A stretch of 64,000 bases of DNA from Macrostomum lignano. Taxonomy: Eukaryota. The notes beneath the pieces are model-generated. The model did not search any database, was not told the origin of the DNA, and was given only the letters and a program-made list of their open reading frames with translations. The stretch lies in assembly GCA_002269645.1 (NCBI GenBank), contig NIVC01002746.1:1-64000 (forward strand), read 5' to 3'. Position 1 is the first letter of the stretch. Every line of letters starts with the position of its first letter. The position numbers and the translations under genes are program-made. Positions 24,261 to 63,265 of the stretch are shown here, piece by piece.

Positions 24261-24279
24261 CTAAGACCGACAGACAGGC

Positions 24280-24316
<37 letters not shown>

Positions 24317-33055: not shown

Positions 33056-33643
33056 TTGACAAGTAGAAAGTAAAGATAACCGCAAACAGACAATTACTCA
33101 CAATATGTTTTATTTCACTGCTTATATATGACAATCAAATCCCTCGACAAATGCACAGAGACGAAAAATGATGCACAAGTCTGGCCAACCCTAAATTTAG
33201 CCCTCACAGGGCGCATGCAAATGTACGATGTACTAGATGGATGAACTCATCGAAAAAGTTGCGCAAGCTATAGGCTGCTCACGAGCTGGGCTTTCTAGAA
33301 TCAGAGAAATGTAATTTATCTCTTATCTTCCAATTTTCTAAGATAATAATACTCCGGAGAGTCTAGCATGGCGGCGATCTGTAACCTTATCTTATGTCAT
33401 GGTTCCTGATATCCGTGAGGGCGATTGTAAAATCGCGTAATTTTTTTGGTTGGATCGTCGGGCCGGAGATCCTTAACTCCGGAGAGCAGAAACCCTAACA
33501 CCGGGCTCGAGGATTCTAGGAATGCTTGTGCGTGTTTTATTCAAGTCGAAAACTTTTTAATACTTTCAGTATGAATAGCTACGCCGAGTTTGTCGCGATT
33601 AGTACGGTGATTGATTGAATAAGACTGCTTGCGCCACGGTTCA

Positions 33644-34508
33644 AGCCTAGTGGTTGTTGTAGCCTAGTGGTTGTAGCCTAGTGGTTGTTGTAGCCTAGTG
33701 GTTGTAGCCTAGTGGTTGTAGCCTAGTGGTTGTTGTAGCCTAGTGGTTGTAGCCTAGTGGTTGTAGCCTAGTGGTTGTAGCCTAGTGGTTGTAGCCTAGT
33801 GGTTGTAGCCTAGTGGTTGTAGCCTAGTGGTTGTAGCCTAGTGGTTGTAGCCTAGTGGTTGTAGCCTAGTGGTTGTAGCCTAGTGGTTGTAGCCTAGTGG
33901 TTGTTGTAGCCTAGTGGTTGTAGCCTAGTGGTTGTAGCCTAGTGGTTGTAGCCTAGTGGTTGTTGTAGCCTAGTGGTTGTAGCCTAGTGGTTGTAGCCTA
34001 GTGGTTGTAGCCTAGTGGTTGTAGCCTAGTGGTTGTAGCCTAGTGGTTGTTGTAGCCTAGTGGTTGTAGCCTAGTGGTTGTAGCCTAGTGGTTGTAGCCT
34101 AGTGGTTGTAGCCTAGTGGCTGTAGCCTAGTGGTTGTTGTAGCCTAGTGGTTGTTGTAGCCTAGTGGTTGTAGCCTAGTGGTTGTAGCCTAGTGGTTGTA
34201 GCCTAGTGGTTGTAGCCTAGTGGTTGTTGTAGCCTAGTGGTTGTTGTAGCCTAGTGGTTGTAGCCTAGTGGTTGTAGCCTAGTGGTTGTAGCCTAGTGGT
34301 TGTAGCCTAGTGGTTGTAGCCTAGTGGTTGTAGCCTAGTGGTTGTAGCCTAGTGGTTGTAGCCTAGTGGTTGTAGCCTAGTGGTTGTAGCCTAGTGGTTG
34401 TAGCCTAGTGGTTGTTGTAGCCTAGTGGTTGTAGCCTAGTGGTTGTAGCCTAGTGGTTGTAGCCTAGTGGTTGTAGCCTAGTGGTTGTAGCCTAGTGGTT
34501 GTAGCCTA
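33644..34508. repeat. 14-bp minisatellite GTAGCCTAGTGGTT (17-bp variants)
   Basis: Seen directly. Confidence 0.97.
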
Positions 34509-34569
34509 CGCATAGCCTACGTTGTTTTGTGCCTACGCATGGGGGCGCGTATTCTGAGTAGCTCATATA

Positions 34570-36256: not shown

Positions 36257-37415
36257 TCAATCGGAGTCGCAGAGCTGCTGGAGCTGCTCAAACTCGCTGG
36301 CGCTCAGCACTTTTGCGCTGAATGCGTAGCAGAGCATGACGCCGTTGAGGCAGTTGGCATCAACCAGCGATTGCCCCAGGCGAAGGCACTCGAACAGACT
36401 TGTCGAATAAGAGTTCGCCTCTGAGTAGGTATAGAAAACCGGAGCGATGGAGCCGTTGAAGAAGAATTGCTGATGCGCAGTTCTGTTGAATGTGAAACCA
36501 ATAGAAATCTCTTTTTGCATGCCACCGGAGGGTAGAAATGATGGCGACAATGAGAACAGCACGGCATTGTTGTTGAGCACAGCTCCGTTGTAGATGTAGT
36601 CGTTGCTTTTAGCAAAAGTGTTTCCCGTGTTTCCGTTGCACTGCTGGAATCTGTGGTAGAACTGATAGCTGAAATAAAGATTATGTAAAGTAACTGTATT
36701 TTACGGATGAACTAAACTAGAATTGCAACATGTACTTTGAAAAAAAAGTGCAATACCCAATGCCAAAAGGGTGTCTGACTCTAGTAAACGCTGAGAATTC
36801 TTGGTTCATCGATAGAAAGTTCCAGAACCCGGGAGTCTCGGTGCTCAGGTAGGAGCTTGTTTCACCAGCAAAGTGGGCACCAGCTGCATCAATTGTCACA
36901 TCGTGAGCCCTGAGACAGGACAGTCTCGGGTTGACCTCATTCTTCAGACCGCTCCGAGAGAACTTGTAGAACAGCTTCAGCTTGAGCTGTTTCACCAGGG
37001 GCTCAGAAGACTCTGCAGTGATAAATGCATAATCAATTTAAACAAAGTAAAAATTTCATTGGAGAGACGCAGAGCTGTCACGACAGCAGCCACCGAGCCG
37101 CTCACCGCAGTCTCCGCACAGCACATCGGTGTACTTGTAAGAGTCGCAGTCGCCGTCAGTCCATTGCTCGAGTTGGGAACACGCGTCTCCATGGTAACAC
37201 TGGCGGGTGGCGATGTCGAAGTGGAATGCGTTGCAGGTGCGAAGTCGGGAGCAGGCGGCGGCGCACTGCAGCTTGTTGGCCAGGCGGTGCGGCAGCGGAG
37301 AGGCGGCCGCGGTGGGGCAGCGTCGGGTCTTTGTCGCTGCGAATTTCGGCAGCACCTCGGCGCTTGAAGTCGCCGCCAGCAGGCAGCTGAGCAGCAGGAG
37401 GCAGAGCACTCTCAT
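36257..37415 (-). CDS. Secreted PAN/apple + LamG/ConA-like protein, copy A (intact, about 325 aa)
   Basis: Exons 37415-37106, 37012-36757, 36668-36257; phases 1 and 2; GT-AG. Signal peptide MRVLCLLLLSCLLAATSSA; PAN pattern LQCAAACSRLRTCNAFHF..C; LKLFYKF..AHFAG..SYL resembles LamG-like folds (domain call by eye). Confidence 0.8.
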
Positions 37416-38793
37416 TTGAATTTGTGGCTTCCAGCTCAGTTTGTGCCAGTACAAAAATTATTACCATGTGGCTTATAAGTTTAGTCAAGATAGGTTGTAT
37501 CGATTTGAATTTAGCAATTATTTATTTAGCTGGCCCTGCTTTTATTGGTTGTCCAGTCAGCCAAGAGAATTTCAAAGGCTTCGTTTAAGATTAAATGGGC
37601 GCACCAGCTATTCGTCTGAATTGTTTTGTCACGTGCTTGACTGAGTTTTAATGTGCATTCATGTATTCAGTGTGACTTTGACATTGATTGATTCTTACAT
37701 GTACCATGAAGTGAGTCTTGAACAAGAAACGAAACCTGAGCCTGTGCTTCAGACTAGAGATTTTTACGGGCAATTAAGGGGTAGGAGAGGTTCACCCTGA
37801 CAATTTTTAGTCTGCGACGGAACAGAGTATCGCAAGCGCACGAAATTTAAGAAGACGCGTGCTACTCTTTGATGCGCAAACTTGTTGCTCAACCAAGAAT
37901 CAAGTCCCCAGCCCTTCCGACCGTCTAGATATTCAACGATTCTGCCAGAAGGTCAAATACCTTGACAAGCCTCCTAACTTCATCATCACGTCGACCGAAT
38001 GTGCAGCCTGCATCAGCTCTGACTTTATTGGTCACTGGCCCTCAACCAGGTAGAGCTTCTGGACCTTTAACAGGTGCGGCACCAGGTGACTATGGACAAC
38101 CTGTTGCGAGTTTCTCTATAGTTTCGTTGATCAAGCCTCCACAGTAGACAAACCTCAACTGGTGGTCATCCTCTGAAAATCTTGCTCACCATGGACTTAT
38201 CGTCGACCGTCAGCAGCGTCTGGCTTGAGACCGAGAGACGGTTAGAAAAATCCGTTTAATAGCTTAGAGTCATATCTAAAGTGAAGAAAATCTTTGAATA
38301 ACGTTTAAAATAGTTAACTTTTTATTTATTAGAAATATCATTAATTTTAAATATTCCTTACTGTTCAAATAAAAATTGTGAGTTTCACAATGTTGCTAGG
38401 AGAGTGCAAGTGCTTACAGTACTTCTCATTGTTAATTTTTCCTGGCTGATATACAAAAAATAATTTTAGTGTTTAATTACTAATTTTAGTGTTTTAATCA
38501 TAATAAATTGATTCAGATATTTAATTAGATAAGAAGAATGGGTGTAAGCAGGCATTATCGACTCTGCATGGTTTAACAAAATATAGTCGTAGTGCAACGA
38601 CAGATTATAGTTAAAATAATTTTTAGAAAAGCAGAGATATTAACTTCTACTTGAGTACTACGAAGAAATAGTAGTACTCAGGTTAGTATAGTAGTAATAG
38701 TAGTACTACTACCATTTCTAATGGTAGTTGGATGTTAAAATGTAAAAAAAATATTCGTTTCACTTGAGTTAACCGTGGTGCTTCATCTGTGAT

Positions 38794-39146
38794 TTAGCTA
38801 CTGCTGAGCCAGTAGTTAGTGCAGAGCTGATCCAGATGCTGAAACTCGCTCAGGTTCAGCGCTTTATCGCTGAACCCGAAGCAGTGCATCGTGCCGTTGA
38901 GGTTCTGGCTACCAGATCCAGCCTTGCCCAGAGTTAGACATTCGAAGAAACGAGAGTACATGGACAAATCATTTCCTGATGTCATCGCTTGAACATGGTC
39001 CACAAATGCAGTTGAGCCTTTTGAATAAAAGTGCGATGGTGCAACACGTTAAAGCATATCCAGCTGTGATGGTCGCTCGCCTCCCATCGGTAGGCAAAAC
39101 TGCGGCCGAGTGGCCGATTAGTCCAGTAATCGATGATTCGGTTTTC
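38794..39146 (-). pseudogene. Orphan, frameshifted exon 3 of the PAN-LamG family
   Basis: VLPTDG..AGYAL in one frame, FECLTLG..LNGTMHC..LDQLC in another. Upstream exons are absent. Near-identical to 45805-46146. Confidence 0.75.
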
Positions 39147-40885
39147 CAAGCCCCGAAACCTCGAAGGGCGAGGCAAAAGAGCACAATGGAACCCCTGGAA
39201 AGCTATTAGATAGGCGAACAGAAGCAGCTTTAAGATAATTATTCAACTGTCAAGTCAATTTGAATAGCCGAATCTAATAAAGCCCCTTTTCATTCCAGTC
39301 AGTAGCGACACCCCGCCGCAGGCACAATGGCGACTAAACCGGCTGGGAAAAGCAAACTGAGCAGCGGCCAGCTTAGAGAACAACGCGGCACGCGGCATCT
39401 TCTGGCGCACCCTGAGGGAGAAAACGTGAGGCCCACCTACAGACTCCTATTCAACCCGAAGCTGCCCAAGAAGGCGAGATCAACCCCAAGCTGCCTGACA
39501 ACCGAGAGAAACAGAGGACTGTTTAATCATTCATAGACAGAGTTAAGAGACGGAAAATTAAGCTCTTTTTCTATAATCTTTCTATCCCAAATTCTATCTA
39601 ACTCAACACATAGATTTGCGAAACCCCGAGTAATCTCTAACCCTCACACTTAGCAACCTACTAGAACTAACTGAATTCATGTACAACTAGGGGACTGAGT
39701 CCCAGATTTTTATTGCTTAAAACCCCCCGCCGTTGCTAACCACGCGAAGACACCCCACCGGCGGCGGGGGAGGTCAAAAATGCTAATTGGTATAAATAGA
39801 CGCTCATCTCAAACTGGAGCGGCGCTTCGTTTTTCTTGCGCAGTTTTCGATCTCGAATTGTTCCCTTTGAATTGGCCTCTGGATTATCCAGTTGGCACAA
39901 ATCTAAGTCTTCAATACAGTTATTTGTCTTAATTGTCACGCAGAGCAAATCCGAGAAAGAGTCAAACTCAGCTTCAGATACTAGGAGATCCCGTCAGTTT
40001 ATACGGTTTTCTCTGACGGCCTGATGAGAGAAATTAGAGCTTTACGAACCTTAGACCGCTAGACATCTATCTTAAGAAAGTGAGAACACCAACTCAAAGG
40101 CTCCAGAAAAAAACGCGTATAACCAGTATTATTATAATTAAGCCATGATCCGCTTAGCAAAATATGTAGATCGTTTACAGTTTAAAGTTATTGTTTATAG
40201 CTAGTCAGATAGGCGCTCCGAGATATAAACAATTGAATGGGAGAAAAATACTTGTATTGAAAAATGCGTGTATTTGCCGATAAAAAATATATGATATCGA
40301 GGGACGGCCTTACCTAGGTAGTCTTCCATTAAAACCCGAGAGACGTACTCCATGAAAACATTGTAACTTACATTAGATAGTCACGTGAGATTGCTTGCGT
40401 ATGAAAATTACGCAATACAGAGTTACGCCAGACTTGTGTACATTGTGATAATTACGCTCATAGATGAACTCTACTGCTTGGAAGTATAAGAAAGACGATT
40501 GCAAAAATAACGAGAGCCTTGACAAAGAGATTACATTCTCTGTTTGTTGTTTTTAGTAAATATGCTGAGTTAGCTCAGTTATTATGGATAAATAATTGTT
40601 TAAATAAGAGCGTATATTTTAGAGTGATTGACCAAATATAAGTATGAAAAACAAATAAATAAATAATTCGGTATATGAAAATAAATGAAACTCTTTAACG
40701 GTAGGTTAAAAATTAAAATATTTCGTTAAAAATTTGCAATTTTCTCAACATAAAATCAAATTGTAAAGCGCCGTTTCTTCTACTCGAAAATATTGCAAAA
40801 AAAATTAAGAATGATCTAGCCATTATAAGCTGGGACAAACACGTGGTTCTACAAGAGTTGGTATTGGTACAGCAGACTCGAATAC

Positions 40886-41895
40886 CGAATATTTGAGTGG
40901 TGAATATTTTAGTAGTGAATTTTTGAGTAGTGAATATTTGAGTAGTAAATATTTGAGTAGTGAATATTTGAGTAGTGAATTTTTGAGTAGTGAATATTTG
41001 AGTAGTGAATTTTTGAGTAGTGAATATTTTAGTAGTGAATTTTTGAGTAGTGAATATTTGAGTAGTGAATATTTGAGTAGTGAATATTTGAGTAGTGAAT
41101 ATTTGAGTAGTGAATATTTGAGTAGTGAATTTTTGAGTAGTGAATATTTTAGTAGTGAATTTTTGAGTAGTGAATATTTGAGTAGTGAATTTTTGAGTAG
41201 TGAATATTTGAGTAGTGAATTTTTGAGTAGTGAATATTTGAGTAGTGAATATTTGAGTAGTGAATATTTGAGTAGTGAATATTGAGTAGTAAATATTTGA
41301 GTAGTGAATATTTGAGTAGTGAATATTTGAGTAGTAAATATTTGAGTAGTGAATATTTGAGTAGTGAATATTTGAGTAGTGAATATTTGAGTAGTAAATA
41401 TTTGAGTAGTGAATATTTGAGTAGTGAATATTTGAGTAGTGAATATTTGAGTAGTGAATATTTGAGTAGTGAATATTTGAGTAGTGAATATTTGAGTAGT
41501 GAATATTTGAGTAGTGAATATTTGAGTAGTAAATATTTGAGTAGTGAATATTTGAGTAGTGAATATTTGAGTAGTGAATATTTGAGTAGTGAATATTTGA
41601 GTAGTGAATATTTGAGTAGTAAATATTTGAGTAGTGAATATTTGAGTAGTGAATATTTGAGTAGTAAATATTTGAGTAGTGAATATTTGAGTAGTGAATA
41701 TTTGAGTAGTGAATATTTGAGTAGTGAATATTTGAGTAGTGAATATTTGAGTAGTGAATATTTGAGTAGTGAATATTTGAGTAGTAAATATTTGAGTAGT
41801 GAATATTTGAGTAGTGAATATTTGAGTAGTGAATATTTGAGTAGTGAATATTTGAGTAGTGAATATTGAGTAGTGAATATTTAAGTAGTGAATAG
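40886..41895. repeat. 15-bp minisatellite GAGTAGTGAATATTT, about 67 units
   Basis: Seen directly. The paralogous site at about 47865-47930 has only about 4 units. Confidence 0.97.
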
Positions 41896-42065
41896 TAAAT
41901 ATTCAAATAATGAACAGTGAATATTTGTCTGCTTGTTGAATTTCTTCCGAAAACATTGTCTCAGCAATCGTTAGAACGAATTAAAGTTCATGAATTCCAT
42001 CAGCGTTTGCTAGCTGTTCAATTCAACGTCCAACGAGCCGTTTTTGCCCAGTGAAAAAAACCATT

Positions 42066-43294
42066 TTAGTCCGAATTGCACAGCTTCCGGATTAGCTCAA
42101 ACTCGATCAGGCTGAGCATCTTGGTGCTCATTCCGTAGCAGCTCATGCTGCCGCTAAGACTTTTGGAATCCATCTTACCTTGGCCAAGATGCAGACACCC
42201 GAAATCGCTTGGAGAATACAAGCCTCCGGATGGAAATAAGCCAGCAGGTGTCACAGAGTCATTCAAGAAAAATCCCTGGTTAGAGAGGCCGCCAAAAGCA
42301 AATCCTGTTGACATTTGGTGCTGCAGGCCGTCAGTGGGCAAGACAGAGGGTGACGAATAATAGAAACCAAGAACAGAACCGTTGCTTAATAAATGCGTTG
42401 TTTGCAAAGTTAATTTATTGTTCCACTTGTAAAGCGAGTTTCCGGCATACACCTGGGTCCCGCAGCGCAGGAAACGATGGTAGTAAACCCACCTGCAGAT
42501 CATAATTGATGGTCAGAATATGATAATGTTTTTTTAGAAAATAATTGGAACTATTTTACCATGCTTTCATTGGGGTATTTAAACAGTTAAACTTACCCAG
42601 CATCAAAAATGTGCTTTACTTGAAAATAGATGGAGTATTCAGTAGCAGAGTCCAGAAGCTTCTCAAAACCGGGAGTCTCAGTGCTCAGGTAGGAGCTCCT
42701 GTTGCCCTTGAAGTGAGCACCTGCTGCATCAATTGTCACGTCGTGAGCCTTGAGACAGGACAGTCTCGGGTTGACCTCATTCTTCAGACCGCTCCGAGAG
42801 AACTTGTAGAACAGCTTCAGCTTGAGCTGTTTCACCAGCGGCTCAGAAGTTTCTGCAGTGATAAATGCATAATGAGTTTAAACAAAAAAATGATTTTATT
42901 GGAGAGACGCAGAGCTGTCAAGACAGCAGCCACCGAGCCGCTCACCGCAGTCTCCGCACAGCACATCGGTGTACTTGTAAGAGTCGCAGTCGCCGTCAGT
43001 CCATTGCTCGAGTTGGGAACACGCGTCTCCATGGTAACACAGGCGGGTGGCGATGTCGAAGTGGAATGCGTTGCAGGTGGGCAGTCGGGAGCAGGCGGCG
43101 GCGCACTGCAGCTTGCTGGCCAGGCGGTGCGGCAGCGGAGAGGCGGCCGCGGTGGGACAGCGTCGGGTCTTCTCGAATGCCAGCACATCGGTGGCCGAGA
43201 CACAGCAGGCCATGTCACTCAGGCAGAGCAGCAAGAGAAGTGGAGCTCGCAGCTCAGCAAGACTCAAGCGAAACTTACATGCAAAAAGCTTCAT
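42066..43294 (-). CDS. PAN + LamG-like protein, copy B (intact, about 343 aa)
   Basis: Exons 43294-42946, 42852-42597, 42492-42066; donors GTGAGC and GTAAGT; frame open throughout. Confidence 0.8.
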
Positions 43295-45804
43295 TTTGAA
43301 TTCAAGACGCTAATTCTTAATCTACCACAGAAGACTTCTGCAGCTTTCTTAATGCATTTTATGCAACCCGCGATGGATGCAAAAAAGAAGTTTTCTTTCA
43401 TTATGCTTGTATCCGGTTGTCTCTGCACTGGTCTCTGGGATGGTAATAGCCTGGTAGCTTTTAAATCTTAGCGTTGACTGGGCCTAGCAAAGTCCCCGTA
43501 TTCTGGCAGGAAACTCACCAGCAACCTCAGACCAGCTCAGGAAGAAGCAGACAATTTGAAGTAAAGATATCTCCAGTAGAGTTTTTGCTTTTCCGCTTTT
43601 GTTGCGAAAGAAGAAACTTTTTACTGATGCATTTCTCGCATATGTTGAAGCCATGAACGGCTTCTAGCGTTTGTTCTAGCTATTTTCGCTTACTCAAACA
43701 ATCCACTATAGCCCCTATAGAAGATTGACTGACGAGTGACAACGTTTGAGTCGGACAATATCCCGCTAGTGTTGCGGCCGTCACTGCATCACTCTGAAGT
43801 TCTGAGCACAGAGCAACTCGTAAAATTAACGGAATTTGGCTGAAAGTTTATGATGGAAAACTTTGCACAGACTGATTGTTCACGGTCGTTTGTTAAAATC
43901 ATTCAATTTTTCAAATGCTATTCAGTCCCATGCTGTGGTTCTGTTGCAGAAAATTCGACAAATACAATTATGAGACGTTATAACTCACTAGTGGCGACAG
44001 CGGACCCCAATCAAACTGATTGCCAATGATTTTTATCGTTTAAATCGATCGACGATTCAAGACTTGCTTTATGTAAGCTAGATCGCGGCTACTAACTAGT
44101 AGCTGGCGAAAAAAGAATACAAAGTAAAGCTTCTGCAGTTTCGGGAAACGGATGTTGGAGCGGATCATTTCAAAAGTCTACGTGTATGAAAGTGAGGACT
44201 GTATAGCTTGCTCTTGCGGTTAAGACCGGCTAAAAGCAGTCGGAGTTAGAAACCGCGGTCCCTGACTTACTTTGTATGCAAGTTTGAATCTTCCATTTGA
44301 TAGACACTCGATCCATGGAAACATTTTAACCTATATTAAATAGTTAGGTGTGGTGCTTCCATATAAACATGACGCAATACAGAGTTCGCAAGGATTTAGC
44401 ACCTTGTGTCCTGTGTCCTTGTTTCTGTCCACAGAACACTTCAGTGGTTCTGTCTAAATGTCAATTTTCTACGCATTAATCACAATGTAAAGAGAAAATG
44501 TTAATATTGACTCGCGAATCTTACTAACTTACTTGCAAATACACTGAAAGTTTGATACAAGAATCTTACAAAAGACCGTCGATGGACAGCATGGTTTGGG
44601 AAGTGGAGAAGAGCGCAAATCTGATTCCAAGTAACGCCAAGCCAAAATCCGCCTGTCGAAAAAGGGATGATTTCCACAGGCATCTTTTTATGCGCCCGAA
44701 CGCGGCAACGCGCACACAACTGTCAAGAAGACAGGCTAATTTTTGTTGCACACCTCAAACAAGAATCAAGTCGCCAGCCTTCCGGACTGTCGAGATATTC
44801 AACGATTTTGCCAAAAAGTCGAATTTTTCCTTGAGCATTTAAGTATTCAACAGAATCAGCACTGCCGAGCCTCAAAATTTCATCAGCTCGTTGCCCACTC
44901 CGCCTTCTGGTGATTATGCTGATTATGGACAACCTGTTGCGAATTTTTTTAGTTTTGCTGATGATCAAGCCTCGACCGTGGGCAAGTCTCAGCTGGTGAC
45001 CATACTCTGAAAAACCTGCTTGTTATGTTTTCAGGTTACTTCAGTATGCTTAAGACGTTAGTTATTAGTGCTGATATCATAGCAGACTTTTACGCTGCTC
45101 CAAGGTTCTTAGCCTTGCTCTTATTTCTCTTTATTTAACATTCTCACAGCGGGCTTTTAACCCAAGCCTGTTTTGCAGCTTCATTTAGTCCATAGATAAA
45201 ACAAAACGCGTCAAAATGCATATGCAATTAAAATAATATCAAGATTATAGTCACGTCATATCACTGCTCGCCATGGACTCATCGTCGACTGTTAGCAGCG
45301 TCTGGTTCGAGACCGAGAGACGGTTAGAAAAATCAGTTTCATTGCTTAGATTCATATCTAATTTGAACAAAATCGTAAACTTTTTTATTAGTAAAATTAA
45401 TTATTTAAAATATCCCATACTGCTCAAGTTAAAATTGTGAGTTTTAGAAAGGTTGCTATGAGAGTGCAAGTGCTTACAGTACTTTTGATTGTTAAATTTT
45501 CCTGGCTGATATACTAAAAATATTTTAGTGTTTTAATCATAATAAATGGATTCAGATATTTAATTAGATAAGAAGAATGGGTGTAAGCAGGCATTATCGA
45601 CTCTGCATGGTTTAACAAAATATAGTCGTAGTGCAACGACAGATTATAGTTAAAATAATTTTTAGAAAAAGCAGAGATATTAACTTCTACCTGAGTACTA
45701 CGAAGAAATATTTCTAATGGTAGTTGGATGTTAAAATGTAATAAAAAGATTCGTTTCACTTGAGTTAACCGTGGTGCTTCATCTGTGATTTAACTACTGC
45801 TGAG

Positions 45805-46905
45805 TCAGTAGTCAGTGCAGAGCTGATCCAGATGCTGAAACTCACTCAGGCTCCACGCTTTATCGCTGAACCAGAAGCAGTGCATCGTGCCGTTGAGGTT
45901 CTGGCTACCAGATCCAGCCTTGCCCAGAGTTAGACATTCGAAGAAACGAGAGTACATGGACAAATCATTTCCTGATGTCATCGCTTGAACATGGTCCACA
46001 AATGCAGTTGAGCCTTTTGAATAAAAGTGCGATGGTGCCACACGTTAAAGCATATCCAGCTGTGATGGTCGCTCGCCTCCCATCGGTAGGCAAAACTGCG
46101 GCCGAGTGGCCGATTAGTCCAGTAATCGATGATTCGGTTTTCCAAGTTCGAGTTCAAGAAAGAATGCACCGGTTCATCGAAAGTTGCGACTCAATAAGTG
46201 TGTAATAAAATACGAGCGTATAAGAGCAACCAATCATAACTGTAAATCCGCTTTACTTCTACTTCGTATTCGGGGCTTGTGCACCAAAAACTCATATTGA
46301 CGAACACCAAGGCACCGAGAGAGTACGTGCCTGGTGATATAAAAATAAACCATTGTGAATTACACAATCCTACTGAAAATACCGGTATTATCATAGATCG
46401 TTTACAGTTTATAGTTACTGTTTACAGCTCGTCACATAGCCACAGACAATGGAGTGGGAGAAAAGCACTTACCCGGTTTCGAAGGCGTGTCGGATACTAA
46501 CAAAAGCCAAGAATTCAAAAGGTTTTGGCTGGAGAAATTCGTTCAACTAGAGAGTCTCAGTACTCAGAAAGGAACCAGAGTTGCCAGCAAAGTGAGCACC
46601 GGCTGCATCAACTGTCACATCGTGAGCCCTGAGACAGGACAGTCTCGGGTTGACCTCATTCTTCAGACCGCTCCGAGAGAACTTGTAGAACAGCTTCAGC
46701 TTGAGCTGTTTCACCAGCGGCTCAGAAGACTCAGCAATGATAAATGCATAATCAGTTTAAACAAAGTAAATGATTTCATTGGAGAGACGCAGAGCTGTCA
46801 AGACAGCAGCCGCTGAGCCGCTCAACGCAATCTCCGCAAAGCACATCGGTGTACTTGTAAAAGTCGCAGTCACCGTCAGTCCATTGCTCGAGTTTGGAAC
46901 ACTTT
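45805..46905 (-). pseudogene. PAN-LamG copy C, pseudogene
   Basis: Exon 1 is 5'-truncated. Intron-1 donor GT>TT and acceptor CAG>CTG. In-frame TAG at 46549-46547 in exon 2. Stops and a frameshift in exon 3. Confidence 0.85.
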
Positions 46906-48101
46906 GAGTCAGACAATTGCCTCTGTTGCTACATCATTCGGAATTGTTCTGAATAAAGTCTGAGTACAGAGAGCGACTTCGTTCAAACAAAATTTGACAG
47001 AATGGCGATTTCTGCTCAGACTTGATTTTTCACACGAGTCTTTTGCATGTGAGTATTTGCCGATAAAAAATAGATGATCGAGGGACGGGCTTACCTCGCC
47101 AGTAGTGTCGACAGCAGACCTCAATCAAACACGGACTGTCAGGCAATTCTAAGACTTGCACCCATTTTACAAAGATCGTTTCAAAATATTCATCTGACAA
47201 TGGGACTGTACGAGAAAGCTTGCTCTTGCGGTTGAAGTCAGTTTGCTCAAAGTCTTGGCGAGGCTAGATATCGGTCTTACTTTATTTGTATTGAGTTTGA
47301 GTCTTCCATTAAAACCCGAGAGACGTACTCCATGAAAACATTGTAACTTACATTAGATAGTCACGTGAGATTGCTTGCGTATGAAAATTACGCAATACAG
47401 AGTTACGCCAGACTTGTGTACATTGTGATAATTACTCTTTTTAGATGAACTCTATTGCTTGGAAGTATAAGAAAGACGGTTGCAAAGAGAAAGAGAGCCT
47501 TGACAAAGAGTTTACCTTCTCTGTTTGTGTTGTTTTTAGTAAATATGCTCAGTTGGGTCAGTTATTATGGATAAAAAATTGTGTATATAAGAGCGTATAT
47601 TTTAGAGTGATTGACCAAATAAGTATGAAAAACAAATAAATAAATAATTCGGTATATGAAAATAAATGACACTCTTAAACGGTAGTTTGAAATATTTCGT
47701 TAAAAAATTGCAATTTTCTCAACAAAAAATCATATTGTAAAGCGCTGTGTCTTCAACTCACGAAAATATTGCAAAACAATTTTAAGAATGACCTAGCTAT
47801 TAGAAGCTGGGACAAGCACGTGGTTCTACCAGAGTTGGTATTGGTACAACAGACTCGAATAGCGAATATTTGAGTAGTGAATATTTGAGTAGTGAATATT
47901 TGAGTAAAGTGAATATTTGAGTAGTGAATAGTAAATATTCAAATAATGAACAGTGAATATTTGTCTGCTTGTTAAAGTTCTTCCCAAAAACATTGTCTCA
48001 GCAATCGTTAAAACAAATTAAAGTTCATGAATTCCATCAGCGTTTGCTAGCTGTTCAATTCAACGTCCAGAAAACCGTTTTTGCCCAGGTAACAAACCAT
48101 T

Positions 48102-49318
48102 TTAGTCCGAATCGCACAGCTTCCGGATTTGCTCAAACTCGTTCAGGCTGAGCATCTTGGTGCTCATTCCGTAGCAGCTCATGCTGCCGCTAAGACTGCT
48201 GGAATCCATCTTAGCTTGGCCAAGATGCAGACACCCGAAATCGCTTTGAGAATACAAGCCTCCTGATGGAAATAAGCCAGCAGGTGTCACAGAGTCATTC
48301 AAGAAAAATCCCTGGTTAGAGAGGCCGCCAAACGCAAATCCAGTTGACATTTGGTGCTGCAGACCGTCAGTGGGCAAGACAGAGGGTGACGAATAATAAA
48401 AACCCAGAACAGTGCCGTTGCTTAATAAATGTGTTGTTTGCAAAGTGAATTTACTACTCAACTTGTAAAGCAAGTTTCCGGCATACATCTGGTTCCCGCA
48501 GCGCAGGAAACGGTGGTAGAAAATTCGCCTGCAGATCATTGATGGTCAGAATATGGTAACGGCTTTTTAAAAGAAAATTGGAACTAAAATAACATGCTTT
48601 TATCGGGGTAATTAAGCAGTTAAACTTACCCACTGGAATGAAAATCGTGGTTTACTTGAAAATAGATAGAGTACTCAGAAGCAGAGTCTAGAAGCTTCTC
48701 AAAACCAGGAGTCTCAGTGCTCAGGTAGGAGCTTGTATTGCCTTTAAAGTGAGCACCAGCTGCATCAATTGTCACATCGTGAGCCCTGAGACAGGACAGT
48801 CTCGGGTTGACCTCATTCTTCAGACCACTCCGAGAGAACTTGTAGAACAGCTTTAGCTTGAGCTGTTTCACCAGCGGCTCAGAAGACTCTGCAGTGATAA
48901 ATGCATAATCAATTTTCCTACAAAGTAAATGACTTCATTGGAGCAATACGCTCGTAGAATTGTCAAGACAGCAGCCGCTGAGCCGCTCACCGCAGTCTCC
49001 GCAAAGCACATCGGTGTACTTGTAAGAGTCGCAGTCGCCGTCAGTCCATTGCTCGACTTGGGAACACGCGTCTCCATGGTAACACAGGCGGGTGGTGATG
49101 TTGAAGTGGAATGCGTTGCAGGTGGGCAGTCGGGAGCAGGCGGCGGCGCACTGCAGCTTACTGGCCAGGCGGTGCCGCAGCGGAGAGGCGTCTGCGGTGG
49201 GACACTTTTTAACAGTCACGAAGGACACGAGCTGGCTGCCAGCAGCCGGGCCCAGGCAGGGCAACAAAAATAGCAGCATCAGAACCGCCATGCAACTCGA
49301 GACTCTGTACCAATGCAT
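48102..49318 (-). CDS. PAN + LamG-like protein, copy D (intact, about 337 aa)
   Basis: Exons 49318-48991, 48888-48630, 48528-48102. Signal MHWYRVSSCMAVLMLLFLLPCLGPAAG; exon 3 closely related to copy B. Confidence 0.8.
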
Positions 49319-51390
49319 TGTGAGAACTCCGATCGCGATGCGAAATTCGGCTCACAACTGATGCTTTTAAGCTGTCAGAAAGATATCGATCTGGTTTGGT
49401 GAAGAAAAACGTCCGTATGCAATGATTGTCAGCTCAACTGCTTTCCGGAAGTCTGAATCAGCAATTCCCGTCTCGACTTTCAGCGAGTGAGCTTTCTTTA
49501 CATCCATTTTGTTCGATTTGAAAGAGACATCGGCAGTTGATCAGGTCTGGAACAATTGCAAAGCAAGCATTCAGACAGTCGTCACTGTTGCGAAGACAAT
49601 GGACGCATCAGGGTCGCTTTTCTATGCAAGGGGTGGTAAAAGCATCACATGACTGTATGACTAGGCTCCAGAATTTTCAGGTTTACCTTAAAACCTTTCC
49701 CAGGCACATAAATGTAGCTGTTGGAGTTGCGGCTCCCCATGGCATCGCATGTGTTGTCACTTTTCTCCATCACTGCTCTCTGATTTCCGCAGGCAAACAC
49801 ACGCACGCGCTGTCTGTCTTACAAACATTGAGAGTCTGGTCCTTTTCCGTGATTGTGGGGAAGACTTGGTCTGAAAAAGCGCTGTTTTGTCAAAAAGTTT
49901 CAGACATTTCGGAACACTTTCAGACACGAAGAATGGCCGACTGGAAAAAAAGTATTAGGAAAACAAGCGACAGGTCAAAGGACCTGAGGGATACTACTTG
50001 CAGCAGACAAACAACACTCGTAGTGGATCTAGATAACTCCGAACTTTAAACGGAGGTCATACTCGGATGTTCAAAAGATTAGAATAGCTATTGTGAACTT
50101 TTGAATTCTTATAAACTCTCTCAAAGACCACTAGAAGTTACCGTTGTTTCCGGATGTAACTTTTGAAGTCCCACTTGTTTGCATTGCAGCTAAACTTTAA
50201 ATGCTCATAACTCTAAATCTGTCGAATAGAATGCATTTTCGAAAGCAAGCATCGCTAAATACACGTGAGCAATTGCGTTTTTTTAGTCTACGAGCGTACA
50301 TTTGTTACATACAACTATAGCAGGACTGAGAAATATTTCTCAGTCCTTGTTTGGGGACTGATAAATAGTTCTCAGTCCTCCTACAACCGATAAATTACAA
50401 TAGAAGTTGTTGTGTCTCGGGAAAAGGATGAGACTGGGAAAGAGGCGAGAAATGCACTTTCTGTAGGTTAACTTCCAATAATTTAGCAATATTTATGAGT
50501 CTTACGTCCTGATACAATAATAACTTCTAGGTGGTCCTTGGACTCTCTTTCTCACCAAGAAATTTCGCAGCGAAAGTCGGAAATTTGTTAGTACTAATCA
50601 ACTTTATACATCCACAACTAGTGATCTTTGGGTTGAATGATTCCAAAACTATATTGAATTTGTATATCGTACAAAATCGAAGTAAAAAAGTCGATTTGAC
50701 TGATTTGTTTTGTCCTTTTGGCCGTTGAACACATAGATAATGCTGGACTCGAAAGCTGGTGAATGTTTAAAACCCGTTAGCCCTAATGATGGCAGTTAGT
50801 GAACAATATTAATAGCGACTCTACAATGCACAAAGTATTATCATTAGGTAAAAAATGTGTTTTTTTTACGAATTTACACTGCTGCAGAGTTGGTGGCGAA
50901 ATTGTCAGTAAATATTGAAGGTTTTTGCTGAGAGAGTTTACTTAACGGATAGCCCAATACGAGTGCAAATGCATTCTAACAGCCTGCAGTTAGTATATGG
51001 ACTAGCTCTGTGCCCTTGTGCCTTGGCAAAAAGTCGATGAGAGTTGATTGTTTCCGGAAATATTTAAACTTAAATTTTTAACGTATTTTTAACGTACACA
51101 CTTCTTTGCACAGGTCTGCACATCACTTGCACATCACATCAGATGCCCCTACTATGCGTACAGCCGATCCCGACGCCAGCCGAATCCTTTTTGATGTTCC
51201 CATGGTTCCGTTCCTTGCCTATTGTAAGCGCCTGATCACCCAAAACCCAAAGTGCAAAATTTTGTTAGGCCTCAATTGTTATATTAAACGCTTGATATCG
51301 TTGTTTATTTAATCGAGGAGTGAACGAGCCTTAAGCCTCAGATCCTTAGAAATCCATGCAAAATCGGCTTTGGGTAACTTAAATCAAGTC

Positions 51391-52410
51391 TCAATCGGTT
51401 TCACACAGCCGCTCAACCGCAGCAAAGTCAGCTAATCCGAAGGCTTTTGCAGCCAGACCGTAGCAGGCCATGCTGCCCTTCAGGCATTTCTCCTGGAAGC
51501 TGTGGTAGCCCAGCCGAAGGCAGTGAAACTCCTCACGTGGCACCGGAGAAAACCCGCCGCTTAACGCATCAATCATTGACAGTGCGCCGTTGAAGTAGAA
51601 GTGCATCTGTTTCTTAGCTGAGAAGACAACGCCAATCGACAGTTTGCGCAAAGCATCGGTGGTGTCAAGAAGCTCTGAGGATGACGCCCGAAGGTACCCA
51701 GCGCCATCGAAGCGAACGGTCCAGGCCGCGTAGTTGTAGATGCCACCGAGACTGCGGCCGAATGTGTTCGCCGGAGTGCTCGTCTCGTCTTTGCATAGCT
51801 GGTAGCGATGGTAGATTGTGTTGCTGTGGCGCAAAGAGAGGTGTTTAAAATGCCTTACTAATCAGAATCTACCTTATTGAATTGTTCTTTATAACAACTC
51901 ACACGCCTTCCATTGCATCAGCGAACTTCAAAAAGAAGGAGTAGTTCTTTCCATAGTCCAGAAGCTTCTCAAAACCAGGAGTTTCAGTGCTCAGGTAGGA
52001 GCTTGTATTGCCTTTAAAGTGAGCACCAGCTGCATCAATTGTTACATCGTAAGCCTTGAGACAGGACATTCTCGGGTTGACCTCATTCTTCAGACCGCTC
52101 CGAGAGAACTTGTAGAACAGCTTCAGCTTGAGCTGTTTCACCAGGGGCTCAGAAGACTCTGCAATGTTAATTTTGTAATCAATCTTTTTTGATTAATTGT
52201 AAATGATTTCATCGGAGCGATAGAATAATAGGCGGCGGCGCACTGCAGCTTACTGGCCAGGCGGTGCCGCAGCGGAGAGGCGTCTGCGGTGGGACACTTT
52301 TTAACAGTCACGAAGGACACGAGCTGGCTGCCAGCAGCCGGGCCCAGGCAGGGCAACAAAAATAGCAGCATCAGAACCGCCATGCAACTCGAGACTCTGT
52401 ACCAATGCAT
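51391..52410 (-). pseudogene. PAN-LamG copy E: exon 1 truncated, intron-1 donor lost
   Basis: The D-type 5' end stops after LQCAAA and runs into intron-like sequence. Exons 52158-51903 and 51823-51391 are intact and nearly identical to copy F. Confidence 0.75.
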
Positions 52411-54073
52411 TGTGAGAACTCCGATCGCGATGCGAAATTCGGCTCACAACTGATGCTTTTAAGCTGTCAGAAAGATATCGATCTGGTTTGGTGAAGAAAA
52501 ACGTCCGTATGCAATGATTGTCAGCTCAAGTCTCGACTTTCAGCGAGTGAGCTTTCTTTACATCCATTTTGTTTGATTTGAAAGAGACATCGGCAGTTGA
52601 TCAGGTCTGGAACATTTGCAAAGCAAGCATTCAGACAGTCGTCACTGTTGCGAAGACAATGGACGCATCAGGGTTGCTTTTCTATGCAAGGGGTGGTAAA
52701 AGCATCACATGACTGTATGACGAGGCTCCAGAATTTTCAGGTTTACCTTAAACCTTTCCCAGGCACATAAATGTAGCTGTTGGAGTTGCGGCTCCCCATG
52801 GCATCGGATGTGTTGTCACTTTTCTCCATCACCGCTCTCTGATTTCCGCAGGCAAACACACGCACGCGCTGTCTGTCTTACAAACATTGAGAGTCTGGTC
52901 CTTTTCCGTGATTGTGGGGAAGACTTGGTCTGAAAAAGCGCTGTTTTGTCAGAAAGTTTCAGACATTTTGAAACACTTTCAAACACGAATAAATGGCCGA
53001 CTGGAAAAAAGTATTAGGAAAACAAGCGACAGGTCAAAGGACCTGAGGGATACTACTTGCAGCAGACAAACAACGCTCGTAGTGGATCTAGATAACTCCG
53101 AGCTTTAAACAAAACGCGTACTCGGATGTTTAAAAGATTAGAATAGCTATTGTGAACTTTTGAATTCTTATAAACTCTCTCAAAGACCACTAGAAGTTAC
53201 CGTTGTTTCAGGATGTAACTTTTGAAGTCCCGCTTGTTTGCATTGCAGCTAAACTTTAAATGCTCATAACTCTAAATCTGTCGAATAGAATGCATTTTCG
53301 AAAGCAAGCATCGCTAAATACACGTGAACAATTGCGGTTTTTTAGTCTACGAGCGTACATTTGTTACATAGAACTATAGCAGGACTGAGAACTATATACC
53401 ATTGACATATGGCCAAGCATTCTTAAATGGATTTACTGCACGGCTTGGGATTTACTGCACAGTCGCGTTATCTATCTATGTCTATGGCTAAAACCAGAAG
53501 AATGCTTTGCTCATAAATCAATGAATCTATCTCTAGGTTCCTTCGTGCGTAAATAGTCTTGGCACGAGTGCGCGTTAGCGCACTTACAGATGACCTACAT
53601 CTACATGAGGTAGGTCATACCTACATCTACAATGCACCTACAGAAAGTGCATTTCTCGCCTCTTTCCCAAGTCTCATCCTTTTCCCGAGAAACAACAACT
53701 TCTATGGTAATTTATCGGTTGTAGGACTGAGAACTATTTATCAGTCCCCAAACGAGGACTGAGAAATGGTAGATTTATCTCTAGGTTCCTTCGTGCGTAA
53801 ATAGTCTGCACATCACTTGCACATCACATCAGATGCCCCTACTATACGTACAGCCGATCCCGACGCCAGCCGAATCCTTTTTGATGTTCCCATGGTTCCG
53901 TTCCTTGCCTATTTTAAGCGCCTGATCACCCAAAACCCAAAGTGCAAAATTTTGTTAGGCCTCAATTGTTATATTAAACGCTTGATATCGTTGTTTATTT
54001 AATCGAGGAGTGAACGAGCCTTAAGCCTCAGATCCTTAGAAATCCATGGAAAACCGGCTTTGGGTAACTTAAA

Positions 54074-55251
54074 TCAAGTCTCAATCGGTTCACACAGCCG
54101 CTCAACCGCAGCAAAGTCAGCTAATCCGAAGGCTTTTGCAGCCAGACCGTAGCAGGCCATGCTGCCCTTCAGGCATTTCTCCTGGAAGCTGTGGTAGCCC
54201 AGCCGAAGGCAGTGAAACTCCTCACGTGGCACCGGAGAAAACCCGCCGCTTAACGCATCAATCATTGACAGTGCGCCGTTGAAGTAGAAGTGCATCTGTT
54301 TCTTAGCTGAGAAGACAACGCCAATCGACAGTCTGCGCAAAGCATCGGTGGTGTCAAGCAGCTCTGAGGATGACGCCCGAAGGTACCCAGCGCCATCGAA
54401 GCGAACGGTCCAGGCCGCGTAGTTGTAGATGCCACCGAGACTGCGGCCGAATGTGTTCGCCGGAGTGCTCGTCTCGTCTTTGCATAGCTGGTAGCGATGG
54501 TAGATTGTGTTGCTGTGGCGCAGAGAGAGGTGTTTAAAATGCCTTACTAATCAGAATCTACCTTATTGAATTGTTCTTTATAACAACTCACACGCCTTCC
54601 ATAGCATCAGCGAACTTCAAAAAGAAGGAGTAGTTCTTTCCATAGTCCAGAAGCTTCTCAAAACCAGGAGTTTCAGTGCTCAGGTAGGAGCTTGTATTGC
54701 CTTTAAAGTGAGCACCAGCTGCATCAATTGTTACATCGTAAGCCTTGAGACAGGACATTCTCGGGTTGACCTCATTCTTCAGACCGCTCCGAGAGAACTT
54801 GTAGAACAGCTTCAGCTTGAGCTGTTTCACCAGCGGCTCAGAAGACTCTGCGATGATAAATGCATAATCAATTTAAACAAAGTAACTGATTTCATTGGAG
54901 AGACGCAGAGCTGTCAAGACAGCAGCCGCTGAGCCGCTCACCGCAATCTCCGCACAGCACATCGGTGTACTTGTAAGAGTCGCAGTCGCCGTCAGTCCAT
55001 TGCTCGAGTTGGGAACACGCGTCTCCATGGTAACACAGGCGGGTGGCGATGTCGAAGTGGAATGCGTTGCAGGTGGGCAGTCGGGAGCAGGCGGCGGCGC
55101 ACTGCAGCTTGTTGGCCAGGCGGTGCGGCAGCGTAGAGGCGGCCGCGGTGGGGCAGCGTCGGGTCTTTGTTGCTGCGAAGTTTGGCAGCACCTTGGCGCT
55201 TGAAGTCGCCGCCAGCAGGCAGCTGAGCAGCAGGAGGCAGAGCACTGACAT
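54074..55251 (-). CDS. PAN + LamG-like protein, copy F (intact, about 334 aa)
   Basis: Exons 55251-54942, 54847-54592, 54512-54074. A-type signal peptide. A 1-nt deletion changes the tail to EPIET versus ETD in copy E. Confidence 0.8.
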
Positions 55252-56431
55252 TCGGATGGACTTTGCCTTAGCTAATTGTAGGGCAGCTCTCTTGTTAAAA
55301 CCTGTAGCTAGTGTATTTTAGACACGGGTTGGTTTATCTTAACTTAAAATTTGGTTCCAGTTCCATATAGCTATTCCTTTTCAGAAATGGGCGATGCTTC
55401 ATTCTTGAGTGTTTATAGTGATTGACGCGCAGGTTTTGAGAATAGAATTTTGTACGAGTTTTTGGATATTTGTATGCTGTCTTCTTTAATTCAAGGGGAG
55501 GGGCAGACCATGCACTTCAAATCCTCTATAACTGATGTCGGTGGCTCGTAGGTGTCCTCTTCACAGTGCCAATTTTACACGCAAATCGTTTTGGATTGAC
55601 ACTTACCAATTGCTGTCCCATTCTCTCATTGTTTCATCAACCTAGGTGAAGTGTCGATGCAAGAATTAGACAGACGATGCGGGTTCATCTGCACTGCTCA
55701 GTACGCTGATTGCTTGTTTAAAAAACAGCAAATTGGTTGTCTGACCAAGCGAAATCAACTCGAGCGTTTTCTCTGACGCTTTGTGTTGCAGTTTTAAAAA
55801 TCTATTTCAGCCTTATCGCACCACTACAGAAAGGTCGCTGCAGCACCTGGACTTGAGATCCTCTGACCAACTTTTGAACTTTTCTGTGGATGGCTCGACT
55901 CGTGCTGCCGTCTGAGGACCTCAGAGCAGTCAGCATGGCCCTCTCTGGGCATGGCTGCTCTCCTTCAGCGCCAGGTAAGTGAGGAGCGGTGCCCCTTCTG
56001 TCGCTCAGGAAGTTTGTCGTTTGATTGGCGTTATTTAATGAATTAAAGCAGCTGCTCAAAGGCTCAAAAACAGCGCCAAGGGCTCGAGCAAAACAAAGCA
56101 AAGTTGAGCAGGCTTGAGCAGTTACCGATTTTCGATTGCACGAATTAGGACCATCAGAATAAGGACAAAGAGGAATTACAAATCCACCAAACCTACCAAA
56201 AGCAAAATTGTGAGCACTTATCATGATTGGAGTTGCGCCGGGGTGAGTTGAGCCGAGATTGTTGTTGCCTCGACAATTAACTGATTGAATTTGAATTAAT
56301 AAACACAAATTGATCATGATTGTCGAAGCAGCGCCACAGATACGACTCGTACTCGTAGGTCTATTTAATTGCTGGCTCAAAGCAGCAGCCGAGTCAAGGA
56401 CTAGCTGTTAGTTGGAGAAATTCCGGAAAAA

Positions 56432-57616
56432 ATGAAGAACTGGAACGCAATTCAACTACACTTCACCTGCCTCCTACTACTCAGCTGCCTGGCGGTGACT
56501 TCAAGCGCCAAGGTGCAGCCGAAGTTCGCCGCGACAAAGACCCGACGCTGCCCAACCGCGGCCGCCTCTCCGCTGCCGCACCGCCTGGCCAGCAAGCTGC
56601 AGTGCGCCACCGCCTGCTCCCGACTGCCCACCTGCAACGCATTCCACTTCGACATCGCCACCCGCCTGTGTTACCATGGAGACGCGTGTTCCCAACTCGA
56701 GCAATGGACTGACGGCGACTGCGACTCTTACAAGTACACCGATGTGCTGTGCGGAGACTGCGGTGAGCGGCTCGGTGGCTGCTGTCTTGACAGCTCTGCG
56801 TCTCTCCAATAAAATCATTTTTTTGTTTAAACTCATTATAAATTTATCACTGCAGAAACTTCTGAGCCGCTGGTGAAACAGCTCAAGCTGAAGCTGTTCT
56901 ACAAGTTCTCTCGGAGCGGTCTGAAGAATGAGGTCAACCGGAGACTGTCCTGTCTCAGGGCTCACGACGTGACAATTGATGCAGCTGGTGCTCACTTCAA
57001 GGGCAACACGGGCTCCTACTTGAGCACTGAGACCCCCGGTTTTGAGAAGTTTCTTGGAGTCGGTTCCACCTACTCGACTTTTGCGCAGGTTCGGCACGCC
57101 ATGTCTGGCGGGTGAGAAAGAATTCACTCTGCTTTTAACATTAAATTGCTTGTAACTTACATGCATCACCTCTCTTGTATCACCTACCTCTGTGCATATA
57201 GGTGGCAGTACTACAGCAGATTCCAAGAGTGCTCTGGAAATTACGCCAGCAATTCAATTTCCCAGTTTCAAGACTATTTCTACGTCTTTAATTGGCTGTC
57301 TACCAACACCGGCGAGGTTCTGTACGGACTATCACCAAACTTCCTCCCTACCGACGGCTCTGTGCATCTCCTGTCGGCTGGATTCACCTACGACGGACTC
57401 GAGTTTAGGGACGTGTATAGGAACGGCACTTTGGAGGCGATTTATCGGACGGCTTACAACACTTATAGTTCTTCCATCGCCGCCTTTCAATGCCTCCGAC
57501 TGGGATTTCATCTCACAAGCGACCGTTGTCTCAACGGCTCAATGAGTTGCTTCGCCCTGAGCACTAAGATGCTCAATCAGACCGAATACGAGATGCTGCA
57601 GCAGCTCTGCTACTGA
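56432..57616 (+). CDS. PAN + LamG-like protein, copy G (intact, inverted, about 333 aa)
   Basis: Exons 56432-56762, 56856-57111, 57202-57616; GT-AG; open frame. Confidence 0.8.
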
Positions 57617-58096
57617 TTCAACATAACCATCAGCACGAGTTGCAGTACAACCTGTTCCAAATGAGAAACCTACTTTTTGAAGTCAATTAGAAATTTGGAC
57701 TTTTGCTTTTACTGACATGTGCATGTAAAACGATTTCTGACCGCCAAGTCTCGAAAAAAATGAATACGACTGAATGGACCGATTAATTACGACCAATATT
57801 ATTTAAAGCACGAAAGCTTCAAGTGAGTAGTGCGAAGCAAGAAAATGAAGACTTTGCTTTTTAATTATTGCACTGCCAAGAGTTAATAGAATCGGGAATT
57901 CACTGCCGCGTCAATTACTGGTGCTTTTAGCATTGCGCAAGCACAGTTCATGGGGAGAGATTAGATTGGTTAGACTATAGTTTCAGCTTCCGTTGGTGAT
58001 TCCCTGTGCACTGTACAGAACAGTGAACAGTGATTCCCTTAATCGCCTGGGGGGTGGGGTTGGGCGCGGCGGATATCAAAAACCTGTAGGCAATTG

Positions 58097-58252
58097 AGTG
58101 CCTGTGGCGCTAAAATGCGTGCCTGCGGCGCCAAAATGAGTGCCTGCGGCGCCAAAATGAGTGCCTGCAGCGCAAAAATGAGTGCCTGCGGCGCCAAAAT
58201 GAGTGCCTGCGGCGCCAAAATGAATGCCTGCGGCGCTTAAATGAGTGCCTGC
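58097..58252. repeat. 21-bp minisatellite, left part (split by the LTR element)
   Basis: Unit GAGTGCCTGCGGCGCCAAAAT. Confidence 0.9.
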
Positions 58253-63112: not shown

Positions 63113-63265
63113 AGTGGCAATGACATAAGGCATGGCCAGCCAGGCCAATCCGCCCCCCCCACCTAATTGAAATTCCTGGCATTTTGACTTAATACTTGAC
63201 AGTTATAGTTACTTCTGCCGTTTACCCAAAGTTGCGTTAATTTTGCTTTAGGGTTTTTTACATGT

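Follow-up and report, generated by a model that had tools for sequence, protein, structure and literature searches.

Probable domain-limited gene conversion in a tandem array of predicted secreted PAN/apple-like jelly-roll genes of Macrostomum lignano

Partial concerted evolution is exemplified by the 5' conversion of human Siglec-11/Siglec-16 and by the recombining SmPoMuc mucin genes of Schistosoma. In both systems conversion is limited to one part of the gene, introns included, and lies beside a divergent part, and recombination among members has produced chimeras and pseudogenes. In conotoxin and other venom genes, FREPs, VCBPs and Sp185/333, the variable part instead shows a ratio of nonsynonymous (dN) to synonymous (dS) divergence above 1 or somatic or allelic hypervariability. 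A gene array from Macrostomum lignano was compared with both groups. It lies in a stretch of 64,000 nucleotides (nt), referred to as the window (GenBank assembly GCA_002269645.1, contig NIVC01002746.1, positions 1 to 64,000 of the forward strand), to which all coordinates refer. The array shares the features listed for Siglec-11/16 and SmPoMuc; it differs from them in that the proteins are unrelated, the converted tract ends within one structural domain and a member in inverted orientation participates. It resembles the second group in having constant N-terminal and variable C-terminal parts, predicted secretion, clustering and an intron that is more conserved than an exon, but differs in its saturated synonymous sites, dN/dS below 1 and the absence of immunoglobulin-superfamily (IgSF) or fibrinogen domains. 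The likeness to these constant-plus-hypervariable immune and conotoxin families is superficial; the dN/dS above 1 that defines them was looked for and not obtained.

The evolutionary pattern is familiar from other clustered families as domain-limited gene conversion, and the protein family itself is undescribed. The locus is very probably a tandem array of anciently diverged, Macrostomum-restricted paralogues in which an island of ~0.5 kb has been overwritten by conversion and unequal crossing-over, the rest of each gene keeping its old divergence.

Seven copies (A to G) and one isolated 3' exon fragment (the orphan) were located at 36257-57616 by tblastn using the spliced proteins, and none was found in the rest of the 64 kb. 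The seven copies and orphan exon reported in the initial annotation were thereby recovered, all within this interval, but only five of the seven are intact, E being without most of the PAN coding sequence and C being a pseudogene. The genes consist of three exons with canonical GT-AG introns, the first in phase 1 and the second in phase 2. The intact copies A, B, D and F (minus strand) and G (plus strand) encode complete products of 325-343 amino acids (aa). The features of the array are as follows.

36257-37415, minus strand: gene A, 325 aa, exon-3 type A; exons 37415-37106, 37012-36757 and 36668-36257 (GT-AG gene model with complete open reading frame; tblastn).
38821-39150, minus strand: orphan, the 3' ~330 bp of a C-type exon 3, without exons 1 and 2 (tblastn high-scoring segment pairs in two frames; three-frame translation).
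40713-41906, unstranded: 15-nt satellite array between the orphan and gene B (repeat search).
42066-43294, minus strand: gene B, 343 aa, exon-3 type B/D; exons 43294-42946, 42852-42597 and 42492-42066 (gene model; tblastn).
45817-46902, minus strand: copy C, pseudogene; exon 1 remnant 46902-46826, exon 2 46731-46473, exon 3 ~46147-45817 (tblastn; self-comparison).
48102-49318, minus strand: gene D, 337 aa, exon-3 type B/D; exons 49318-48991, 48888-48630 and 48528-48102 (gene model; tblastn).
51391-52410, minus strand: copy E, chimera, exon-3 type E/F; exons 52410-52254, 52158-51903 and 51823-51391 (gene model; self-comparison).
54074-55251, minus strand: gene F, 334 aa, exon-3 type E/F; exons 55251-54942, 54847-54592 and 54512-54074 (gene model; tblastn).
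56432-57616, plus strand: gene G, 333 aa, exon-3 type G; exons 56432-56762, 56856-57111 and 57202-57616 (gene model; tblastn).
56537-57054, plus strand: island in G, comprising the 3' two-thirds of exon 1 (PAN), intron 1 and exon 2 as far as 'STETPG' (blastn self-comparison, sliding identity, dS contrast).
36814-37331 (A), 42654-43171 (B), 46552-46902 (C), 48690-49204 (D), 51960-52220 (E, partial) and 54649-55167 (F): equivalents of the island in the other copies.

Gene G is inverted relative to the other copies and stands head-to-head with F. In copy C the 5' half of exon 1 is gone, the intron-1 donor is changed from GT to TT and the acceptor from CAG to CTG, a stop follows 'STETL' and exon 3 can be read only with two or more changes of frame; the frameshifts of the orphan, as read by three-frame translation, are those of copy C. 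In copy E most of the PAN coding sequence of exon 1 is deleted and a cryptic GTAAGC donor leads to a PAN-less product of 281 aa, with which the public protein model P0002 (UniRef A0A1I8HM75) agrees residue for residue, including the unusual splice junction.

The island measures ~490 bp and is 89-97.5% identical among copies. It starts at 'TKTRRCP' in exon 1, immediately after the signal peptide, spans intron 1 and extends to 'STETPG' in exon 2. Sliding-window identity across the five intact loci and their flanks was 0.91-1.00 over most of the ~490 aligned columns, as expected from the nearly identical core through intron 1 to SYLSTETPG that had been described before, with dips (0.73-0.85) within intron 1 and at the 3' edge. 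The edges of this plateau are sharp, and outside it the mean pairwise identity was 0.3-0.5 upstream and 0.3-0.6 downstream. The contrast between a constant core and a variable exon 3, on which the initial annotation was built, thus holds, but the boundary does not, since variability starts within exon 2, right after STETPG.

Between exon-3 types the nucleotide identity was 74-98% in intron 1 and 18-46% in intron 2, and intron 2 and both flanks were unalignable. Values of dS, calculated by the Nei-Gojobori method, were 0.04-0.17 for the part encoding PAN and 0.02-0.33 for the core of exon 2; in the signal-peptide region, the exon-2 tail and exon 3, dS between types was saturated (>1 or undefined). 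Since intron 1 and the synonymous sites share the low divergence, selection at the protein level is not the cause of the identity of the island. The GC content at third codon positions (GC3) was 0.67-0.75 in the island versus 0.54-0.66 in the variable half, which is the direction predicted by GC-biased conversion.

Triplet counts of informative sites at breakpoints revealed that the nearest relative of a gene changes along its length. Gene F is A-like in exon 1 (61:4) and D-like in exon 2 (30:8), B is G-like in intron 1 (16:2) and D-like in exon 3 (198:8), and G is A/F-like in exon 1 and B-like in intron 1 and exon 2. These switches gave Fisher p values of 1e-7 to 1e-34, and the mosaic pattern was repeated in a table of the variable sites of the island. 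Genes B and D are whole-gene duplicates (41824-43159 versus 47857-49204, 91% over 1.35 kb in the self-comparison), and dS between them was higher in the exon-2 core (0.26) than in exon 3 (0.13). The exon-2 core of D is closest by dS to that of F (0.10) and that of B to that of G (0.07); conversion therefore postdates the B/D duplication.

Neither inactivation nor orientation has removed a copy from this pattern. The C type was frameshifted before the C/orphan duplication, the two copies of which are now 14% different, and the island of pseudogene C is still 89-92% identical to those of the live copies in the self-comparison. The island of G is 97.5% identical to that of B although G is inverted. 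Two marks of partial concerted evolution, a low-divergence tract with a contrast at silent sites and introns and segment-wise incongruent relationships among paralogues, were found. Homogenization of the core, as already proposed in the initial annotation, is upheld by the low dS and intron 1 identity, by the mosaic ancestry and by the comparison of cores, which are 90-97% identical among members of the array and 40-51% identical to those of the unlinked relatives P0005 and P0006. The public model P0001, which is either unlinked or derived from beyond the window, has one amino-acid difference from the array proteins across the PAN domain and many in the exon-2 core (82% identity over the whole core); judging from P0001, family members beyond the window may also be involved in exchange of the PAN exon.

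The products are laid out as a signal peptide, a cysteine-rich module of ~75 aa and a C-terminal domain of ~215 aa. The Pfam matches of protein G were to PAN_1 (PF00024; E 0.006, 16.8 bits, below the cut-off of 21.4), PAN_4 (PF14295; E 0.008, below the curated cut-off) and Laminin_G_3 (PF13385; E 0.013, 16.1 bits, below the cut-off of 27.6), and a phmmer search of the Protein Data Bank (PDB) with protein G returned nothing useful. An exhaustive HMMER search of 1.84 billion representatives yielded only 22 family relatives (at least 22 clusters at 50% identity). All those for which the source was looked up come from M. lignano, and their automatic names in UniProt are 'Apple domain-containing' and 'Lectin_legB domain-containing'. 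PAN_1 matched 13 of the 22 aligned family members (best E 2e-4) and Laminin_G_3 four of the 22 (best E 4.2e-6), and in the PDB the family profile picked up the 6ryw PAN domain (E 1.4e-4) as well as MIC4 and the N domain of HGF (E 0.002-0.2).

A confident structural model was built using AlphaFold2 on the 22-sequence family alignment, with a predicted local distance difference test (pLDDT) score of 87.6 and a predicted template modelling (pTM) score of 0.85; predictions from a single sequence and from a shallow alignment of six close sequences (pLDDT 38.9) were discarded. The model consists of a helix-on-sheet N-terminal module followed by a beta-sandwich. The module contains a strand at residues 8-15, a helix at 29-38 and strands at 42-48, 53-58 and 66-76, mostly with a pLDDT of 75-89, and the cysteine spacing C..C...C.....C...........C is kept in the family alignment, any disulfides being putative. 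The jelly-roll part has a pLDDT of 90-98 over most of residues 90-307. Foldseek returned 232 PDB matches at E<=1e-3, the top ones being concanavalin-A-like (ConA-like) jelly rolls (E 1e-8, probability 1.0), so that both the model and the Foldseek matches show the beta-sandwich jelly roll of this superfamily. Together, the profile matches and the model support predicted products that are secreted PAN/apple-like and concanavalin-A-like (Laminin_G_3-type) jelly-roll proteins, in agreement with the secreted PAN/apple and LamG-like products first suggested for this locus. In the model 'STETPG' falls after the fourth or fifth jelly-roll strand; the boundary between constant and variable parts therefore splits the jelly-roll domain, the strands N-terminal to it being constant together with PAN and the remainder being variable.

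The N-terminal module is like PAN/apple proteins (PAN_1/PAN_4; the HGF N domain, the apple domains of plasma prekallikrein, Toxoplasma MIC4) in its ~75 aa, its richness in cysteines and its predicted helix on a beta-sheet, and the profile and PDB matches are weak but consistent. The canonical PAN/apple domain has four to six cysteines, whereas the region in the array has nine. The nearest solved folds to the jelly roll are HCN, the N-terminal jelly-roll half of the clostridial neurotoxin receptor-binding fragment. The sequence identity to it is 12-18% and the resemblance is at the level of the fold only; the array proteins are without the protease, translocation and beta-trefoil ganglioside-binding domains of the neurotoxin, and nothing suggests toxicity. 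The motif 'LxLG...LxGxMxCxxxSxKxLSxxEFxxLxxLC' of the array resembles the C-terminal motif of Laminin_G_3. To our knowledge, the fusion of PAN to a ConA-like jelly roll has no described counterpart elsewhere. The family had not been recognized in the initial annotation either, and literature searches, including the main text and supplements of a seminal-fluid screen, gave no description of a PAN/apple and jelly-roll family, its relatives being named only automatically; nor did the literature searches give an expression table or paper linked to the array genes. The distant member P0013 is solitary and has no intron across coding residues 2-366 in the Mlig_3_7 assembly, and the tandem intron-bearing array is therefore a derived sub-branch of the family.

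According to the explanation favoured here, the island (PAN, intron 1 and the first four or five jelly-roll strands) has been overwritten repeatedly by non-allelic gene conversion and unequal crossing-over, and the signal-peptide region, the remaining jelly roll, intron 2 and the flanks have retained their old divergence. The island doubles as a recombination substrate that remodels the array, giving the hybrid E and the segmental duplicates described below, with dead copies persisting. The tract may be confined by flanks that are too diverged for heteroduplex formation, and selection possibly removes conversions that would erase the distinct C-terminal halves. In protein terms, one constant module (PAN and the N-terminal strands) might serve a common partner, oligomerisation or anchoring, and each member would combine it with one of several old jelly-roll bodies binding different glycan or protein ligands. 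The family may act in immunity, reproduction, mucus or adhesion; an immune or recognition role, hinted at in the initial annotation, is speculative.

Several points weigh against this explanation. By themselves the window proteins score below the curated Pfam cut-offs, and the part concerned with protein function, a shared handle and different ligands, is something that we only infer. Individual copies may be assembly errors in a repetitive, cryptically polyploid genome. The saturation of dS makes dN/dS between types unreliable, and episodic positive selection may have acted on a few sites.

A further-reaching proposal, which we regard as unlikely, is that the array constitutes a germline-encoded macrostomid recognition repertoire. 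Conversion would then keep a common handle for a shared partner, selection would keep ancient ligand-binding bodies, and recombination within the handle would re-pair promoters and signal peptides with specificity halves; if so, re-pairing of the kind seen in E would create new combinations of expression and specificity.

By pairwise nucleotide identity exon 3 falls into five types, A, B/D (93%), C/orphan (86%), E/F (98%) and G, with A and G each represented by a single gene. The same groups had been distinguished by eye, and the accompanying estimate of well under half identity was accurate: identity between types is 41-55% in nucleotides and 26-43% in amino acids. The motifs common to all types (Y.RF..C, LPTDG, S.GF.F, FY.NG, CL.LG, L.G.M.C and L..EF..L..LC) are structural core motifs of a Laminin_G_3-type domain. 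A C-terminal half so variable beside a near-identical N-terminal half, in products predicted to be secreted and lectin-like, would suit adaptive hypervariability of the conotoxin or immune-effector kind, with the core merely conserved and the C-terminal half driven apart by diversifying selection or targeted hypermutation. Such a process is considered very unlikely here. Divergence as great as that of exon 3 is seen at synonymous sites, in intron 2, in both flanks and in the signal peptide, and because of this the island, not exon 3, is the anomaly.

The substitution pattern points the same way. The dN/dS of exon 3 (Nei-Gojobori) was 0.12-0.32 between types, where it is unreliable owing to the saturation of dS, and 0.44 for B-D, the only recent intact pair; no value exceeded 1, and a site-wise dN/dS calculation across the exon-3 types was dropped because of the saturation. 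Variability was also compared by secondary-structure class, giving a mean conservation (out of 5) of 2.86 in predicted strands and 2.76 in loops. Replacements are spread equally over the two classes without enrichment in predicted loops, and neither dN/dS nor this comparison of strands and loops gave any sign of accelerated or surface-focused diversification of exon 3. The unlinked relatives P0005 and P0006 provided an internal control, the variable halves of the array being 27-41% identical in amino acids to each other and 28-38% identical to those of P0005 and P0006. Because the exon-3 types are as distant from each other as unlinked family members are, the variable half is best read as old paralogous divergence untouched by conversion. 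Ancient divergence is thus the default state of the array paralogues and the island the exception, and the diversification put forward in the initial annotation as an active process is not borne out.

The self-comparison also indicated how the array has been remodelled. The 5' end of D and the sequence upstream of it (49138-50336) match 52230-53395 at 95%, the sequence of E from the 3' flank to intron 1 (51114-52220) matches the equivalent parts of F (53804-54903) at 97%, and the 5' ends of D and E are 100% identical across 300 bp. On the basis of these matches, copy E is a hybrid joined in the island, with a D-type 5' end and promoter region and an F-type 3' half. The layout of the matches is that expected from unequal recombination of the D and F islands with duplication of the interval between them, and the PAN deletion of E lies at or near the hybrid junction. 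A unit consisting of a C-type exon 3, a satellite and a B/D-type gene is present twice, from the orphan to B and from C to D: the orphan region 38183-39150 matches 45265-46146 at 86% (blastn), 40320-40951 matches 47300-47930, and a shorter relic of the satellite lies at ~47774-47930 between C and D. The B/D units and the C/orphan units are segmental duplicates that are older than the event which formed E.

Two smaller differences were observed between the duplicated segments. In the orphan unit, 39150-40320 (1170 bp) is unrelated to 46146-47300 (1154 bp), which holds exons 1 and 2 of C; in the orphan unit, other sequence of nearly equal length has taken the place of the stretch with these exons. 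Within the otherwise collinear D-E and E-F spacers, a 134-bp segment (50335-50468 versus 53636-53767, 95%) is inverted, which points to a small inversion or to insertion of an element once the duplication had taken place.

The M. lignano genome is repeat-rich and cryptically polyploid, and this background, together with the complete identity of the D and E 5' ends, might suggest that some copies, especially E, C and the orphan, have been mis-joined or are duplicated haplotypes or homeologues of a smaller cluster. An assembly artefact of this kind is judged to be very improbable. The copies are 3-14% different over kilobases and lie in distinct flanks, five exon-3 types cannot be alleles, and P0002, which may itself share the assembly, reproduces both the E-specific junction and an E-specific residue (RKLS in E, RRLS in F).

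Nucleotide-level purifying selection on the island instead of exchange is extremely unlikely, whether its target were an antisense gene, a small RNA from the intron or some regulatory element. Open reading frames on the antisense strand do span the island, intron 1 included, in B (308 aa) and G (241 aa), but the frame is broken in A (164 aa), D (114 aa) and F (102 aa) and matches nothing in Pfam. Scanning the whole window against Rfam gave no match, RNAalifold found no covariation in intron 1, and such selection cannot yield segment-wise switches of the nearest relative or a B-D dS that is higher in the core than in exon 3.

Conversion limited to a short, sharp-edged tract is thus presented by the array in a clean and internally controlled form, in which the 3' edge of the tract cuts a single structural domain and inverted and dead members still participate. 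The array also defines a lineage-restricted family of predicted secreted PAN/apple and ConA-like jelly-roll proteins that has so far been named only automatically. M. lignano is amenable to RNA interference (RNAi), in situ hybridization and transgenesis, so that the role of the family and the combination of a constant handle with different bodies are directly testable.

The near-identical island will confound read mapping, gene prediction and the design of RNAi and in situ hybridization probes. Mis-splicing or truncation already affects two public models: P0001 continues into intron 1 ('CGDCGERLQALFYKF'), and P0002 is truncated and is named 'GON domain-containing'; exact look-ups of these two models in the contig collection gave no match. 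In P0003, P0005 and P0007 family members are fused to unrelated genes, and P0003 contains two tandem family units, which hints at more arrays elsewhere in the M. lignano genome.

The window contains spliced GT-AG genes, satellites and retroelements. Directly adjoining the array, an uninterrupted open reading frame of 1243 aa (58541-62272, minus strand) with aspartyl protease, reverse transcriptase, RNase H and integrase domains is a Ty3/gypsy-type long terminal repeat (LTR) retrotransposon, and is flanked by short tandem repeats at ~58040-58290 and ~62760-63160. Outside the array on the other side, an open reading frame fragment with an integrase core domain (32276-33085, minus strand; rve, E 7e-10) is a retroelement remnant. 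The E3 ubiquitin ligase listerin (Ltn1) is encoded by a large gene of many exons at ~13057-24883 on the plus strand, with the Ltn1 N-terminal domain at 13057-13700 and UBC-like and RING domains at 24479-24883; long minisatellites within the introns of this gene, such as those at 13700-14400 and 16500-16876, artificially lengthen open reading frames. Long microsatellite and minisatellite arrays at 40713-41906, 34000-34544, 30795-31839 and 1134-2154 likewise produce spurious long open reading frames on both strands, the satellite units of the window including 15-nt, 14-17-nt and 'SQSV'-coding 12-nt repeats, among others.

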